Numbered from the whole stretch's first letter, positions 1,183 through 54,967 are shown. The stretch: 63,153 bases of DNA, filler included, from Hyphochytrium catenoides (GCA_900088475.1; 13 parts of 13 records of this genome joined end to end with filler, not necessarily neighbours in it), one strand, 5' to 3'. A program made the numbers and translations. The notes: a model not told the origin generated them from the letters alone.

Positions 1183-4100
1183 TCAATCCCACCTGTCAAT
1201 AGTGATCTTGTCTCCTACTCTGATGATAGCAGATGACTCTTCCCCAGTCCATGAGAAGAAGACTCCAAAGAAGATATTAGCCTGTGTGCAGGGAGGATGG
1301 ACCACATTAGCCGTTGTGTTGCCAGCCGGATGAAAAGGAGAGAGAGGGGCGATAGCAGTAGATCTTAAGGATATGTAAATATAGAATGAACCACCTTCTT
1401 TCGCCTGTACCGCGAGAGCTCAAGAAGAGTCTCCCTTCCATAAGTGCCCGTTTCTGGGTCGATGTTCACCATTGAACATCTTGTGCAGAGACCGAGATAA
1501 GAGAGACGCACCTGCACAAGTGGAATGAAAGACAGAGGTCACAAATACGTAGATCAAGGCGCCTTGAGCAAGAGGGCCATGGCCAAATGAGAGCTTACAT
1601 TCTCTCCGATGCGGATCTCTCGCCAACAGTCTTCTGAGTAAGGCTCTGCGCCTCGCGCCAGTATGTTGGGTCGGAACCGGCGGTAACTGGGAGCAAGAGT
1701 GCCGGTTAGGAGGCAGCTTAACGGAGGAATGACCGAAAGATAAGACGACATTTAAGAAGACGGAAGGCAGGAAACTCCAAGGGATAGCTAAAGAGAGTAG
1801 TGAATCTTAGCCAGGCAGAGTCAATAGGCTAAGGCGGGTGCTACGGTTGCTCACCTGAAGTCATCCTCTGCCGGTTCTGTCCCGGTCTTTGTAGGAGTCA
1901 GAGTGGTTCGCTTGGTGAGCTCCTGCACGCTCTCTCTTGATACCAACAGAAGAGGACTTTCATTGGCGAAGCCTATCGGTATCTCTCCTGCTTTCCTTCT
2001 CAAGCATCTTGAAGCCAAATCCTGCCCCTGCTCCTCTCCGTTCGTTTCCCTCTCTTTATATCGCCGCTGGTCTTTAGAACATCCTTCTCTCTCGGTGTAG
2101 CTACGGACCAGAGTACAGGGGCGGCCTAAACAGAGTGAGAACCAATCGGAGACGTCCTTCCCGTATCGTTGGCTGGCACATTTCTCTCCACAAACTGTGA
2201 CCATTAACTCTCCCTCCTCTTGTCCTGCGGTGGTCTGATCGTCTTGCGCAGAACTATTTTCCTTCTCAACTCCGTTGCCTTGGGCACAGATGGCAAGTTC
2301 AAGGTCTGTCTCCATTCCCAGTTGGGGCGCGGAGACCCGGAGAATACGTCGCTCTAAATCTAGAGCAGGGATGATTAGGGAGAGAGAGGAGACATCCTTC
2401 TGTCTCAGCGCCTTCCCCGTTCCGTCCACGATTGCCCATTGCCTGTCATAGAGCAGACCGGACGCAGCGATGGGCCATTCGGTGACCTCAATACCTGTTC
2501 CATTGGCGCGGAGGGTTAGGGTACTTGTCTACCTCTTTCCCGCTCCACCTCGTGCATGCAATCCTCCTCAGCCTGGTGTTTCCCCCTGCTCTCTCCCTCT
2601 TTCTCTCCTTCTTAGTGTTCCCAACCTTTCATCTACCTGAACTTGCTTGCAATAGGGGCTACGTCTCACCTCGACACGACTTTATAGGGTAAAGTACCAG
2701 CTTGTCAACAGCTACCTGCTTGGCAACCTCTCCATAGCTGTCGCCCCCTTTACCGTTCCCAATGAAGGAGAACGTTGAAAGGCTGTTGAATAGGCCGTCT
2801 CCGACATGCTCCTTCTCCTGGAAGTTCTTCTCAATGAAATGTAGAAAGCGGTAGACATCCTCAAAAGAAGACGCGAAGCCGAGAGAGACTCTGACTGCAC
2901 CAGTAGGACGACCATCTATGAGATCGTGGTCATCCCAGCAGACGTGACCTAGGACACAAAGCAATGGTTGAGTTGGCATGGTGTACAGCGGGATAGAAAG
3001 TGCAAACCAAGGCTGGGGAGAGAAAGATGTAGGAAGGAAGACGTGGATTGGAGAGGACCAAGAGTGTGCTTCCTTATTCTCGTTGTGACTCCAAAGCCCA
3101 GGGGCCTACTGACTTACCAGCTTCAAGGTTTGCCATTAGGTCCTCGTCTGATAGCTTAAGATAGCTGCAGGAAGAGGAGGTTTCAGAATGGTTAGAGGTC
3201 TTACTTATATCCTCCGTAAGGCTAGAGCTTGATAGTTTGGTCCTTTTTGCCTTTCAAGTTGATGAGTTCTCTTGTTTATGGAAGCACCAACTGCGTGGGC
3301 TCTTCTTTCCTCGAAGTTGCATTCCCTTCTTCTACCTTTCCTTACTAAACGTCTCACCTCTGGCAAGCTCCAGGGTTGCAAAAGCAACCGGTTCTGAGAA
3401 GAATATTATTGAGCGAGGCCACTTTCTGCACCTCAGCATAGCCGACGTACTCTCCAGATGACCGGAGGATATTAAAAGCCAAGGTAGGGCCCTGTTCAGT
3501 ACCAGAGGAAGCAACCATTCAGTGACAACGCTAGTAAGTAAGCAGCAGATGGCTTTCTTGTCCTTGAAGGACGAACCGTAACAAGAGCCCAAACAAAAAG
3601 CGCAGAGGTGATAAAAACTGGAAAAAGAAGAGAGAAGAGGTGCTCACTGGCATTTTTTCAGCTTTCACCTTCAAGATTAGAAGTCAGCACACTGCGACAC
3701 AGGGGCAAGGCACCTAAGGCGGACTTGAGGCTGAGCACAGAGAGGCAGTACCTGCGCTTTGGCATCCTCCCGTTCCCAAGCTCCCCCATAAATCTCTACT
3801 ACTGGGCCCTGCTTTCCTGTTTTATGCCTCAACTCCCTTAGGTGTTTATGAAGATAGCGCGATAGAGAGTGCGTGTGCCTGTACCAAAACGAGTTGAAGA
3901 GGTAGGAAGCGTTGTGAAGCGTGAGACAGGACTCAGGGAGAAGGAATGAGTGAAGCATCGACAACAGGATGAAAAGCTGATACCGCAAATCCATGAGACA
4001 GGGAAGCAACGACTCCATAGCAGAAATACCGGGAGAGGGAGCAGACATAGCGCCAAGTATGGTGAATAGAGAAGAAGAGATAGAGGCAAAAGAACAGCTC

Positions 4101-48942: not shown

Positions 48943-49219
48943 CCATGCAGATTATATGATGAAGGCAGAGCAGGTCCTGCAAGCCGTTGACATGCTGGAA
49001 CACGTCTATTCGCTTGCTGCGGGACGGTATGGCTCTTTCTTTACTTTTTTTGCCGCCATTTTAGCGCTGACGTTACCCTGAACCCTCTTTGCCTTCAGAA
49101 ATATTTCGTTGCTGGTGTTGGGATTCGCATTGGCTTTTCTCTACGGTCACATTAGAGCAGTGCAAAAGGCACGGACAACGGCGATAGCTTTCTATAAGGA
49201 AACGAAGCTCACAGTCTGA
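48943..49219 (+). CDS. 3' end of an unknown gene with a C-terminal TM helix
   Basis: ..LEHVYSLAAGR|NISLLVLGFALAFLYGHIRAVQKARTTAIAFYKETKLTV*, with a GT-AG intron at about 49027-49098. Confidence 0.35.
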
Positions 49220-49351
49220 TCAACAATAACAATGTGACCTATTGATTTATGTAGCATAAAGGTCCATTTCGATAAAAAGCATGTCCAAATGGCATTAGTA
49301 GTTAAACCCGGCATAGCCTTATGCCGTAGGCACTTTTGAAAGGCCAGTGAT

Positions 49352-52300
49352 TCACTGCAAAGTGCCTGGTAAAATAGGACCAAGAAGTTCAGGGGTCCTG
49401 ACCTCTATCAGCTGCTGCTGGCGGATGATATGGCCGGCGTCCGCTAGCTCTTTCTCCCTACAAGCCTCTCCTCCATAGTTTCTCTCTACGGAGACCGGCA
49501 TGTCTAATATAATGCTCTTCTTGCGAGATTTTCGAGCGATGCTTGTTGCACCTTGGATCCCTCCACTCTGCGTTGATATGCCTGCAATAATCATCAGTTT
49601 AGTTTCCGTATGGTCGACTGTGCAACAGTTTGGGTTGCTAATCTTTTTGCGTCGTCTCTCTAGCTAGCTCCCGGACCTTCTTCTCCTCTACATGCTGTGT
49701 ATACACAGTTGGGAGCCGTCTTTCGTACCCACCAAGTTCTTTCATGAGCTCCCGGATACTAGTGACTTCTGGGTCCTCTGCCTGTTTTTTCTGACCGTTT
49801 CTCAGGAGCGCGATGTATGTCTCGGTAGTCTCCTTTTCTAGCTGCTGCTTCAATGTCTGGTTATCCGCAACATCTTCCATTTTCAACCTCCTAAATGAGC
49901 ACCGTGAGCACCAAGGCACTTAGCAATCGAAGTAATTGGCTGATACGAGAGGTTGGCAGAGTACCCACGGAACGAGAAGCGAGAGAGATGAGTAGCAGGC
50001 GCAATAGCAGAAGGGCAGTTAAAACTGCATGGAGATAGCAGCGAAGGGTACGGAGTTCTCCACCAATCACTTCGACAGGAACTTCTGACCTAACAAGCAG
50101 GAAGAGGAGCTGCTTCCTGAAGGTGAAGTTTAGCTTCCTGGGGCCAGACTCCTCTGATTCACTTTTCTCTATCCCTGTTCGGCAGTGCTGCATTGCTTCA
50201 TCAAGCCTCCCCAGGTGACCCTACAAGCCCGCACACCACACAGAGTGGAAAGATGGCGCTGCATCAGAAGACTCGTCTTATGGTGGGAGGACAACATCAA
50301 CAGAAGGAGGTACTCAACAGAACGAGAAGAGAAGCAATAAGCTTCAACTGAAGTCAATACTGGTTAATCTGGACTCAGATCCCAGCACCAGAGAGGATTG
50401 AGAAGGGCATCTTTGAAAAGAGATGCTTGTCTGCTACCTCTGCCTGCGCTGCTCCTAGGAGCGCCTTTAGCGCATATTGGGGGCTGGATGGTGCCGATTT
50501 GAGGTGAAGCTTTGTGTACAAAGTTAGTGCCTCATCACTCCGACCGGCCTGCAGAGCAGTAGAGGCCCACAACTGAAGAGTGACCAGGGTAGAGTGATGG
50601 TCTGGTCCGAGAGATTGTTCCTTCCGAGCGGTCAGAACCCGAAGAACCTGAACAGCATCCGACCATCTGGGTGGGAAAGTGCAAGAAGGCCAGCGTAAAA
50701 AGGTTTAAGAACATGGCCAGGTAGAGCTACGAGCTAAGGAAGACCGAAGCAAAGGAAGAAAGAGGAGAGACCTGAAAGTGAAGTGATTAGAAAGACATGG
50801 ATTCATCCACGGCGATAAACTAGAGCTAAGGCGACAGTCCGGGAAGATATGAAGACAAAGCTTATGCCGTATAGGAGCCAGGAACATCATGCTGAAACGT
50901 ATATGCAGGACATATCTGTGGCATTGTAGGTTGTGTGTATCCTGACAAGTAGTTACCTTGAGCTCTCGGTGAGCAGCTTGGCCAACTCCGTCATGCTCTC
51001 AAACGTCTCTTTGTGGGTGAGCCCCAGATGGCTCTCCTTTCCCCTTATCACGGCCCGGAGCAGGGTCTCTGCCTCAGCAAACTGACCTTGGCTCCTCAGA
51101 AGCTGGACGATCAAGAGATATGTAAGAACATGTCGCTATAGTCTGCCTACTACTACAGTATCAAGCTCTGAGGTTATCAGACGGCCAAGAAGCAAAAAAA
51201 AAACAGATGCTGCTCTCTGTGAAGAGGGCACACATGAGCAAAGCAACAGACCAATCCCTCTTTAGTACCCACTTGAGCGACTGCAGAGAGATAAGATGTC
51301 GTGCTGTACCTGTGCCAAATGCTCAGATGTCTTCAAGACCTCAGCACTTTCTGCTCCATGAACCTTCCGTTGCAGTTTGAGAGTCTTTCTGACCACCACC
51401 TCCGCCTCAGAGAACTTATTCTGGCTGGTGAGGACAGAGGCAAGATTTATGTATATTCCAATGGTCTCTGGGTGAGTGGAGCCCAGCACTTCTTTGCTGA
51501 GATGCAGAGCACGCAGCATGTAAGATTCCGATTCAGGAAGCTTGTTCCTCTCTTTTAGCAGGAGGGCGAGGTTATTCATAGCTATCAGTGTCTCTGGATG
51601 AAGTTCTCCTATTCGCGTGGTCGCCAGTGGCCCGTAAAGGACAGATGAAAGGGGAAGCCGACTAAGTCAGAGCTAGCATTGAAAGGTGAGCTAGTAGTAA
51701 CAGAAACGCGAGCCTTAGAAGAGCCTCTTATTAATAGTGGACGGCGAGGCCAGTGAGAGCGACGATGAGAAGAATATGTTAGGGCTCGCCAAGTGTCCCC
51801 TCACCGGCCGCATGAGACAGAAAGATGAGACAGGGAGCGATTACCTAACGTCTCTTGGGTTCTCACAAGTCCCTTATGCAGGAAAGCCTCTGCCTCCTCA
51901 AGCTTCCCTTCGTCTTGTAGCAGAACGGCTAGATTGTTCAAATGAATAATTGTCTCAGGGTGCCGGCCCCCCAAGAGCTCTTCTGCGTGCTCCAAGATAG
52001 TTCTCTCCACAGTCTCTGCCTCCTGAAGAGATCCCATATCCGTCAAGACCTGGGCTAGGCGATTTTCTATAAAGAGCCGTCGAACCTGCCAATTCCAGGG
52101 ATAAGAAAACTGCCGCTCGGACGCGATCGGAAAGAAGGATAATTGATAAGCATGGCTCAAAGTGAAAGTGGTAAGGGACGATAAAGGAAGAGGGTAGACA
52201 AAGCCTATTGGCGGCGTGTCGCCTCAACATGGCCGAGGGAAGGAAAAGGGGTAAAATGGGCAAGCTATACCTCCTCCTCGAGTGTCAACTGAGCCTTTTG

Positions 52301-54464
52301 GACAAATTCATCTCTTGCTGCTTTCAAGATTCTTTTGGCGTCTTCGGACCTGTGCAAAGCATGCAGCACAGAGGCCAAAATACCATCGTCTAATCTTTTG
52401 ATGTTTGCTTCCCTGTCCTTGGTAATGAGCTCCATTACCATGCTCAGAACTGCGGTCGAGAAAGCCCGCACGTAAATGGCGCTATCGAAAGAGCGCGTTA
52501 CCTACGAAGAGTGAGCGGATTGTTAGGAGGGACTGCCTTTCGCAACAAGAGCAGGCATATAAGTCCTATCCCAACAACGAAAAACACCATCAAGAGATAC
52601 TGGCATGTCCATCGAATTTTGGGACGGCTGGGGAAGGAAGAGAAGCCCTTCCGCCAGAGTGGGGAATGTAACGAAGTAATATGACAAACAGAGGATGATA
52701 GATAGAGTTCAAGGCTTGACGAAAAGAGTGGCCAGGAAAGCTGAGTTCGTACCTTCTTCTCTATGACCCAGCGATAATGGCGGTAACCTTGGTGCTTCAT
52801 GAACTCCCAATACTTCAATAGATGACACTGCACCTCACATACATGGCCATTGACCATCATATTCACCTGCAGAAGCCGCAAGTCATGGAGAAGTTTCTTT
52901 AGAAACGTTGTGTCGAATAAGTGGTGCATCTTCTCCCCCTTCCACCCCCCAACGCTTGTCAATAAACAACTTGCGGAACCTCCTAGACCGTAGGCACTCC
53001 GAAAACCTCAACGGCGCTGATGGCTGAGGAATGGAATCTCCGCACTCTCACGTAATCAACTTTTCATTGTGTTCTCTGGCAAGGAAAGCTGAACCTTAAA
53101 GAACAAAACCGTGGTCTTCTCCCGTCGGCGGAGCCTATTAGGCATAGACTTACTTTAACATCTCGATATCCACCTGGGATGCAAACTCCAATGAAAGAGT
53201 TCTTCACCCTCGCCACGGTGAGACTAAGCTCTTTACCGTCTTCTGTTCGAACCATTCGTTGACTCGAATGCTCTGGTGATAGGAGAATCTCTACCGCCTG
53301 AGTTAAGCTAGGAAGATCCTACGCGATGAAGAAACACCAATCAAGCAAGCCAAAGGTGGCCATTGTAAGCGGTTGAAACTTCGAAGCAATGCGACCATGA
53401 GGAGCGACGAAAGTAGTCGAACGGGGAGTGATGTAAATAGCGGGTAATATTGATTGAGAAAGAAAGAGAGATGAGACGAGAGAGAGAGAAGAGGCGAGTG
53501 AGAGAGGAGCTTGAAGGAGAGAGAGAGAGAGAGGCGAGAGAGACATTGAAAGAGAGATAAGACAGAAGAGGGAACTAGTGGCTCTGCCTGAAAGTGACAC
53601 CTTGAAGACTATCGATCCCCGGACGATGTCAATGATCCTGCCTAGATCTCCTCCATAGTCTTCCTCTGCTTTCTCTATTGCTCTCTCCTTCGTCTTATCA
53701 GGAGCCATCCATACTTCAGTCACCCCTTCCAAGGACTTTGAGCACTCCTGCAAGAACTTCTCCAATATAGGTCGCGCCTGAAAGAGACGCACGTGAGGAT
53801 CCATAGATAACGATTGTCAGAGAGAGAGAGCGTGTAGAAATAAGAGTTGGAGAAAGAGTTAAATGATGGACGCTAAAGGAGAACAGGGTGAGGAACCGCT
53901 TGGAACCAACTTGTTCTAGACTGCCCTGCTCAGTTCTAGTTTGCTTTACCTCCTTCCCGGACTCGAAGACCTTATCGACGGTCCTGAAGGGCGAGTCTGT
54001 GTCATTTCTGTGACAGGTCGGCTCTTCCCCATCTCGATCATCCTCCGCAGAGATGCCTGCCAAGCTGCATCGTCGGAGCACTGGTCCTACAACTTGGAGT
54101 TAAGACAGGAAGGCTGACAATCGGTACACCTCCTTCCGCCCACCTGAAAGCTGAGTGCTGCGCGAACGGCGAAGCATCCTCTTTCTTGACTCTGCCTCAG
54201 GGGTGACAGCCATTGCCGCGAGGTTCATTATATCGTTGAACTGGCCTTCACGCTGCATTCTGCGATACATGGCATCGTAGATTATCTGACCAAACTGCAC
54301 GGTAGAGCCTGGAAGGGAGAAGGGGACGTTTACTTCTTAGCTCCTCTGTATGCACTCCATTTGCTCTTTGTAGTACCTTCAACAAGAAGCCGTAGACAGT
54401 GCTCCGCTTGGCTCTGGATTGGGTCTTCCTGTTCGGGTTCGAAAGCCTTCACGACATCCACCAT
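49352..54464 (-). CDS. RelA/SpoT-like nucleotidyltransferase (alarmone synthetase-type) fused to kinesin-light-chain-type TPR repeats, more than 10 exons
   Basis: Spliced NTase domain (exons about 53780-53601, 53318-53154, 52867-52753): KTKERAIEKAEEDYGGDLGRIIDIVRGSIVF...RVKNSF...GGYRDVKVN...CEVQCHL...HQGYRHY. About 6-8 TPRs follow (LGGRHPETIIHLNNLAVLLQDEGKLEEAE, HPETLIAMNNLALLL, LGSTHPETIGIYINLASVL, LGPDHHSTL). The 3' end is uncertain (50375 or as far as about 49352). Confidence 0.78.
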
Positions 54465-54967
54465 ACTAGCTGATAAGTCCTTAGAATCAAGGAAGGATTA
54501 GAGGCAAACTCTTCAATTTGATGATGCTTCTATAGCAGCGAGCATTGGGTGGCTCAGTGTGCTTCCTCTTGATGTTGCTGATAGCAACAGACCATCTGCT
54601 GCTTTATCATGGCTGCTGATGGCGACAAAGATAGCCGGTATTGATGAAGAACCCAGGGCTCTCTAGCAGCAGTATAGCTGCAGGCAATATCTAGCTTCTT
54701 ACATTGGCCTTGGACTATCTCAGAATGATGGAACTGCCAACCAAGAGATAGAACGAGGGAACGAGTTCGACCTAATGATATACGTCGTCGCCTCCCTAGC
54801 TACCTGCTCCTCCTCTTCACCATCCATCCGGGCAGGAGCCTCTCGGTGATCTCCCTGTTNNNNNNNNNNNNNNNNNNNNNNNNNNNNNNNNNNNNNNNNN
54901 NNNTTAATTAATTAANNNNNNNNNNNNNNNNNNNNNNNNNNNNNNNNNNNNNNNNNNNNGAGAGAGG

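Follow-up and report, generated by a model that had tools for sequence, protein, structure and literature searches.

Does Hyphochytrium catenoides carry a nuclear gene in which a RelA/SpoT-type nucleotide synthetase is joined to an array of TPRs, and what would the product of such a gene do? The question is raised by positions 49,352 to 54,464 of a 63,153-nucleotide stretch of DNA made of 13 records of this genome (GCA_900088475.1) joined end to end with filler; we refer to the whole stretch as the window. An initial annotation of this interval had proposed that three exons rebuild a synthetase-like domain, that TPRs follow it in the same gene, and that the product is a domesticated sensor-effector comparable to NLR-like proteins. 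RelA/SpoT-homologue (RSH) enzymes are central to stress signalling in bacteria, and some of them act as toxins; to our knowledge, work on eukaryotes has been confined to plastid RSHs and the hydrolase Mesh1. Our analysis of the piece spanning positions 48943-54859 indicates that its minus strand carries one intron-rich gene, predicted to fuse an RSH-fold enzyme domain, whose nearest characterised relative is the toxin Tas1, to a C-terminal TPR array.

Gene model and splicing

The piece has a G+C content of ~49%, with no strong skew seen, and its list of open reading frames (ORFs) contains a series running along the minus strand. Joined at AG/GT-bounded borders (canonical GT-AG introns), they give a minus-strand model of 13 exons that stay in frame over 2376 coding bases and encode 791 residues without internal stops; the 12 introns are 57-290 bases long. 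Exon coordinates are given below in the direction of transcription. At the heart of the model are three phase-0 exons, 53777-53601 (E3, residues 131-189), 53318-53154 (E4, residues 190-244), and 52866-52753 (E5, residues 245-282), which are the three exons of the initial annotation. Translation reproduced the motif strings quoted there: E3 reads DKTKERAIEK...RIIDIVRGSIVFK, E4 ends in ...GGYRDVK, and E5 reads VNMMVNGHVCEVQCH...HQGYRHYR. E3 thus contains K158-x3-R162-x3-K166, assigned to ATP binding, Y171-G-G, and the catalytic-Asp strand D180-I-V-R183-G-S. E4 contributes a variable loop and the G-G239-Y-R-D-V-K strand, and E5 the C-E255-V-Q257-C-H strand with the catalytic Glu. The last motif, also in E5, had been given as H-x3-HY and is in fact H269-x2-Y272-x3-R276.

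A profile built from 12 relatives with the window sequence excluded (A1) matched the spliced product at 138.5 bits, as one contiguous domain covering residues 114-282. Since this match spans four exon joints and is free of gaps at each of them, the splicing is validated by homology. BLASTP of the spliced model against intron-free relatives was colinear and unbroken over residues 103-319. On the evidence of these alignments, the gene structure is far beyond chance, and the locus is best read as one nuclear, intron-rich eukaryotic gene in which the three exons splice into an intact domain. The domain itself begins somewhat earlier than had been proposed. Its N-terminal helix starts in the preceding exon, 54086-53950 (E2b, residues 85-130), in the part from ~54000; the family profile match begins at residue 114 and BLASTP matches to relatives begin at residues 103-117. 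A 15-residue insertion at the E5/E6 joint, using the alternative donor tgg/gtcata, was made unnecessary by gapped alignment, the donor still being frame-compatible.

The enzyme domain is followed by a helical linker of ~77 residues encoded by 52501-52271 (E6, residues 283-359), which is in frame, has GT-AG borders, and is colinear with the linker of a metagenome gene considered below (L004). No Pfam family above threshold was found in the linker, and no Walker A motif was found in it or elsewhere in the 791-residue model. The TPR array occupies 52085-50090 and comprises E7 (52085-51845), E8 (51608-51310), E9 (51102-50957), E10 (50666-50438), and E11 (50220-50090). Pfam recognised TPR_10 (E 1e-13 to 1e-19) and TPR_12 (E 1e-12) on E7 and E8, TPR_10 on E9 (E 2e-6), and TPR_12 on E10 (E 5e-6), in agreement with the claim that a TPR array shares the gene with the enzyme. 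The repeats follow a strict 42-residue register from residue 365, with six clear units and then one or two degenerate ones (~7 in total); pairwise identity between units is 24-45%.

Over all exons and ORFs of the piece, Pfam found no HD, TGS, ACT, EF-hand, NACHT, or NB-ARC domain, and neither PAAR or MuF delivery domains nor a Tis1-type or hydrolase immunity gene. The predicted absence of HD, TGS, and ACT is therefore borne out for this piece. The comparison with NLR-like proteins holds as far as the repeats are concerned; the NOD ATPase is absent, and the analogy is a loose one.

The ends of the gene are less well defined. E1 (54464-54377, residues 1-29) has a GT donor and a putative start at ATG 54464, the first ATG downstream of an in-frame stop 12 codons 5′; this start is provisional. 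E2 (54308-54144, residues 30-84), an N-terminal extension, has AG/GT borders and a compatible frame. At the other end, E12 (49890-49638), also frame-compatible, would encode a charged C-terminal tail ending with the TAG at 49638; alternatively, a donor after MKELG in E12 would lead to a putative last exon at 49583-49352, where the initial annotation had ended. Either of these is a candidate 3′ end. No Pfam family was found in E2 or E12, and homology supports neither these exons nor E1: residues 1-113 and the last 85 residues of the model match nothing. If ATG 54464 is the start, the first 40 residues contain 7 D/E and 2 K/R, a composition unlike that of a signal or transit peptide, which fits the earlier remark that no plastid-targeting leader is obvious.

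Fold, nearest relatives, and active site of the enzyme domain

Pfam searches of single exons and ORFs of the piece did not find PF04607 (RelA_SpoT), the pieces being too short. Among relatives of the window domain, P0005 scored 33.6 bits against PF04607, above its gathering score of 27, and the closest relative, P0014, scored 24.4 bits, just below it; most other relatives gave no score, and in none does the enzyme part carry a precomputed Pfam domain. The enzyme domain is thus mostly missed by Pfam and, consequently, invisible to routine annotation. When E3 alone was compared with PDB sequences, the best match was Tas1 (6ox6; E 0.0074), while E4 or E5 alone gave no useful phmmer match to the PDB. 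A search of the protein atlas with E3 returned unnamed clusters only. With a profile of the family searched against all PDB sequences, Tas1 was matched across the entire catalytic region at E 4.6e-11. No other RSH protein was found in this search, the next matches being unrelated proteins at E 0.1 or worse, and CapRel and FaRel2 were not reached at E values up to 10.

The fold was tested on models of two relatives: P0014, which is 34% identical to the window domain and has an AlphaFold core with a predicted local distance difference test score (pLDDT) of >90, and the N-terminal domain of a protein from Pelagomonas calceolata. RSH synthetases accounted for all of the 50 best Foldseek matches of the P0014 model. 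In VIA-align comparisons of the same model, RelQ had Z 14.7, RelP Z 13.8, Tas1 Z 13.1 (root mean square deviation 2.6 over 144 residues), and CapRel Z 12.2; RSH proteins ranged from Z 14.7 to 8.4, whereas polymerase-beta-type transferases had Z 8.4 or less. The ranking was the same for the Pelagomonas domain (RelQ Z 14.6; CapRel Z 11.7; FaRel2 Z 7.6), and RelQ, RelP, Rel, Tas1, and CapRel headed the structure lists of both models (Z 11-15). The top matches are therefore RSH enzymes and not Pol-beta proteins in general, as the proposal of a RelA/SpoT synthetase fold would have it. Since the 138.5-bit profile match ties the window to the modelled relatives, the assignment carries over to it: judged from these models, the window domain has an RSH synthetase fold.

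As far as sequence can tell, the characterised protein closest to the window domain is the (p)ppApp synthetase toxin Tas1, rather than a (p)ppGpp synthetase or CapRel. Tas1 of Pseudomonas aeruginosa (type VI secretion, PDB 6ox6) has its fold in common with the window domain, as well as the motif string K-x3-R-x3-K...DY-G-D...D-x2-R, G-Y, E-x-Q, G-H-x2-Y, but is only ~20% identical to it. Tas1/Apk1 is a (p)ppApp synthetase; a PAAR domain serves for its delivery, the immunity protein Tis1 neutralises it, and surveys of its relatives have reported bacterial and phage proteins (PMC10083569). Unlike bacterial Tas1, the window protein is eukaryotic, split by introns, devoid of PAAR/MuF, and equipped with a C-terminal TPR array. 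No structures matched the modelled relatives better than RelQ (SAS1) and RelP (SAS2) (Z 14.7 and 14.3), which have the catalytic Asp and Glu in common with the window domain but show no significant profile-level sequence match to its family. SAS proteins are single-domain bacterial homotetramers that make (p)ppGpp and have no repeats.

Are the residues needed for catalysis still present? Ten columns are invariant in 20 relatives, and all ten residues (K158, R162, K166, Y171, D180, R183, G239, E255, Q257, and Y272) are kept in the window protein. D180, E255, K158, R162, K166, and R183 also align with matching Tas1 residues. The counterparts of D180 and E255 are the Mg-binding catalytic pairs D107/E174 of RelP and D264/E323 of RelSeq (PMC7983052). 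In the gapped alignment of the 20 relatives, the C-terminal motif H269-Q-G-Y272-x3-R276 is intact as well; an apparent replacement of an invariant His by Tyr proved to be an artefact of an ungapped profile alignment and was refuted by the gapped one. The active site is apparently complete, and the ATP-binding and catalytic motifs proposed from the sequence can be retained.

Conservation of the fusion and distribution of the family

The joining of the enzyme to TPRs is seen in other organisms. In L004, a JGI metagenome contig, the ORF P0018 ends at GYRDVK and is followed by a 70-base GT-AG intron (3243-3312) identical in place and phase to the window intron between E4 and E5 (53153-52867). In the next ORF, the remaining half of the enzyme domain (HLCELQLH...GHKVY) comes first and leads, in one unbroken frame, to a TPR_12 array (208 bits). 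Alignment of the window model with spliced L004 was colinear over 521 residues (E 5e-43). The G+C content of L004 is ~40%, and the contig therefore belongs to a different organism. The common intron position suggests that the window gene and the L004 gene descend from a shared eukaryotic ancestor. Eight further ORFs (P0019-P0022 and P0025-P0028) likewise stop after GYRDVK, one of them (P0021) on a contig from the same sample as L004. Upstream of the L004 gene, on the other strand, lies a split tubulin-tyrosine-ligase (TTL) gene.

Uninterrupted ORFs of 1120 residues (L007:2139-5501) and 983 residues (L008:246-3197) each combine an RSH-like domain, a TPR_12/TPR_10 array, and a C-terminal Myb domain. 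The 983-residue form (P0047) is CAH0369265.1 of Pelagomonas calceolata, deposited as a ‘Myb-like domain-containing protein’. The truncated relatives P0014 and P0004 both end in an apparent TPR start. Together, these alignments indicate that the enzyme-TPR fusion is real and conserved in several algal lineages, Pelagomonas included.

The domain family as a whole is, by the database searches made here, rare and patchy. An exhaustive phmmer search of 1.8 billion representatives with E3 found 11 weak relatives (E 0.001 or better), and a word-indexed protein search with P0004 found three proteins only. A locus search with a tighter alignment (A3) returned three metagenome loci and one bacterial genome; no relatives were found when A3 (DIVRGS pattern) was searched against IMG/VR. 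The atlas clusters nearest to P0014 consist largely of diatom proteins. Other members have other partners. The Guillardia theta protein P0001 (XP_005840511, 1281 amino acids) contains two near-identical RSH-like domains (~421-601 and 1123-1279) and no TPRs, P0023 (424 amino acids) joins the same enzyme domain to a C-terminal globin, and P0012 (1178 amino acids) joins it to Ephrin_rec_like cysteine-rich repeats. In a tree of the domain, the deep nodes were unresolved, and the tree supports neither a donor nor a single origin of the TPR fusion.

Two bacterial members were found. One, P0024 (L001:6001-7086), comes from a Deltaproteobacteria metagenome-assembled genome and lies ~2.5 kb from a 2796-residue eCIS_core protein; the other is a 740-residue protein in a Cytophagaceae genome (L009). 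Because bacterial members of the family exist, the proposed domestication from bacteria is plausible. A 78-residue ORF begins 10 bases past the P0024 stop, a layout that resembles a toxin with its immunity gene. Another relative, P0011, is encoded on a 137-kb ENA contig (L003) among ~20 small ORFs on one strand, mostly without families; those recognised on the contig are HNH, DUF4326, DUF5672, DUF559, and Peptidase_C1, and the contig looks viral. When relatives were submitted to PADLOC, no defence-system match was found save for a generic TPR model.

Eukaryotic synthetase-only forms have been listed before, some without a placement (PMC3153485) and some as effector domains that occur rarely in fungal NLRs (PMC4986451). 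The unplaced forms, divRel, are synthetase-only RSHs of fungi, Dictyostelium, and diatoms with a patchy distribution and a suggested bacterial origin (Atkinson et al. 2011, PMC3153485); like the window protein, they have an RSH synthetase domain and no HD hydrolase, and TPRs are not mentioned in that paper. In fungal NLR-like proteins, an N-terminal RelA_SpoT effector is combined with WD40, TPR, or ANK repeats, and these proteins were proposed to be receptors with enzyme effectors (Dyrka et al. 2014, PMC4986451). They resemble the window protein in being eukaryotic and in pairing a RelA/SpoT-type domain with superstructure-forming repeats. In contrast to the window protein, which has a linker of 77 residues and no NOD, they carry NACHT/NB-ARC between effector and repeats, and their enzyme domain is recognised by PF04607. 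Full-text searches, made in a limited library in which absence is no proof, found no RSH-TPR fusion in protists or algae. What appears new is a Tas1-like branch of the RSH fold in a spliced nuclear gene, fused directly to TPR repeats; marine algae of ecological importance, such as Pelagomonas, have the fusion too, under names that speak of no more than a TPR or Myb protein. The long plastid RSH1-4 of plants and algae, which belong to the same superfamily and to photosynthetic eukaryotes, bear a transit peptide together with HD, TGS, and ACT or EF-hand domains. None of these domains was found in the window protein, and its putative N-terminus is unlike a transit peptide; the reading of the gene as a long plastid RSH was rejected on the absence of HD, TGS, ACT, and EF-hand from the piece.

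Proposed function and alternative explanations

We hold, with some reserve, that the window protein is probably an active nucleotide pyrophosphokinase gated by its TPRs. The enzyme domain would transfer pyrophosphate from ATP to the 3′-OH of a nucleotide. Since Tas1, the nearest characterised relative, makes (p)ppApp and drains ATP, adenine nucleotides are our first guess for the acceptor; (p)ppApp would then be formed and ATP consumed. We know of no reliable sequence signature for the acceptor of RSH enzymes. (p)ppGpp stays a candidate product because the structural match to RelQ/RelP is equally strong, and the CCA end of tRNA a candidate acceptor because of the structural match to CapRel. 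The C-terminal TPR array would be the regulatory or ligand-binding part, holding the enzyme in check by autoinhibition until a protein partner binds. A regulated output domain is suggested by the recurrent pairing of the family with sensor-type modules (TPR, globin, ephrin-receptor-like repeats, and TPR plus Myb).

Such a unit would be a one-polypeptide sensor-effector without an ATPase switch, sharing the logic of CapRel SJ46, not its descent. CapRel SJ46 is a fused toxin-antitoxin tRNA pyrophosphokinase. Like the window protein, it (PDB 7ztb and 9erv) is a single chain in which an RSH-fold enzyme at the N-terminus precedes a C-terminal part, in CapRel the sensor; its structural Z is ~12, and no closer analogy presents itself for the way in which the window protein may be regulated. 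It differs in that its sensor is a small zinc-finger-like domain and not TPRs, in being bacterial or prophage-borne, and in lying beyond the reach of sequence searches. As to whether the product would be a messenger or arrest growth, the Myb-bearing Pelagomonas form leans toward regulation, while kinship to Tas1 and the eCIS-adjacent bacterial member lean toward a toxin ancestry.

Several points weigh against this interpretation. The splicing is deduced from homology and splice signals. The fold and family were assigned through relatives at 26-38% identity and a local profile match, and no single exon matches PF04607. A role in regulation linked to DNA, rather than in defence, is hinted at by the Myb domain of the Pelagomonas form. 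Nothing in the TPR units, which are 24-45% alike, marks an immune sensor over a scaffold, and the piece shows neither a hydrolase nor an immunity partner.

If the enzyme is active, one would have to ask whether nucleotides of the (p)ppApp or (p)ppGpp type play a part in the cytosol or nucleus of eukaryotes; the gene would also offer a simple system, of two parts only, in which to learn how an enzyme is gated by a TPR array. A more specific version of the gated-enzyme proposal is that the protein is a NOD-less, single-chain innate immune sensor of algae and other protists, in which the TPRs would recognise a viral or other foreign protein and release the Tas1-like enzyme, which would convert ATP to (p)ppApp and shut down the infected cell. 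We regard this version as distinctly unlikely; if true, a (p)ppApp synthetase would be known from a eukaryote for the first time, and with it a eukaryotic equivalent of the abortive infection that CapRel/Tas1-type enzymes bring about in bacteria.

Among explanations that compete with a gated pyrophosphokinase, the most durable is a housekeeping or stress alarmone synthetase. The enzyme would then make (p)ppGpp or a related messenger, for instance for the plastid or for transcription, and the TPRs would only tether partners without sensing an invader. This is doubtful but deserves weight: the (p)ppGpp-making RelQ/RelP match the P0014 model as strongly as Tas1 does (Z 14.7 versus 13.1), a Myb domain in the Pelagomonas form and a globin in another relative both typify regulatory proteins, similarity between the TPR units is not high, and divergent synthetase-only RSHs have already been noted in fungi, Dictyostelium, and diatoms (PMC3153485). 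Against it, Tas1 is the sole solved RSH structure found by the family sequence profile, very large databases contain few, patchily distributed members of the family, unlike a core pathway, and no targeting leader is apparent.

The chances are slimmer that the protein is a tRNA-modifying translation toxin like CapRel, FaRel2, or PhRel2, which would pyrophosphorylate the 3′ CCA and stop translation upon engagement of the TPRs. CapRel structures are among the matches of the models (Z 12.2 and 11.7), with FaRel2 at Z 7.6, and CapRel is likewise a single chain with a C-terminal sensor; the family profile, however, misses CapRel and FaRel2 at E values up to 10 while reaching Tas1 at 4.6e-11. It is very improbable that the locus is an inactive relic, that is, an unexpressed gene or a pseudo-enzyme turned binding module. 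The first and last exons do lack homology support, and single exons miss PF04607, but 12 introns splice in frame and stop-free over 2.4 kb, and all invariant residues of the family, including the catalytic Asp and Glu, are kept. Hardly tenable is a misjoining of two adjacent genes, one for a small synthetase and the other for a TPR protein: only splice signals and frame connect the exons, but L004 encodes the C-terminal half of the enzyme and the TPR array within one uninterrupted ORF with which the window model is colinear (521 residues, E 5e-43), both parts also lie within a single ORF in L007, in L008, and in the Pelagomonas protein, and on these fusions the reading as separate genes was rejected.

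Around the gene, the rest of the piece offers little else. No RNA family reached threshold in Rfam anywhere in 48943-54859. The flanks, 48956-49081 on the plus strand and 54465-54859, contain short ORFs only, and all minus-strand frames upstream of the ATG have stops. Intron 4 contains an imperfect GA/CT microsatellite of ~45 dinucleotide units at window positions 53456-53570.

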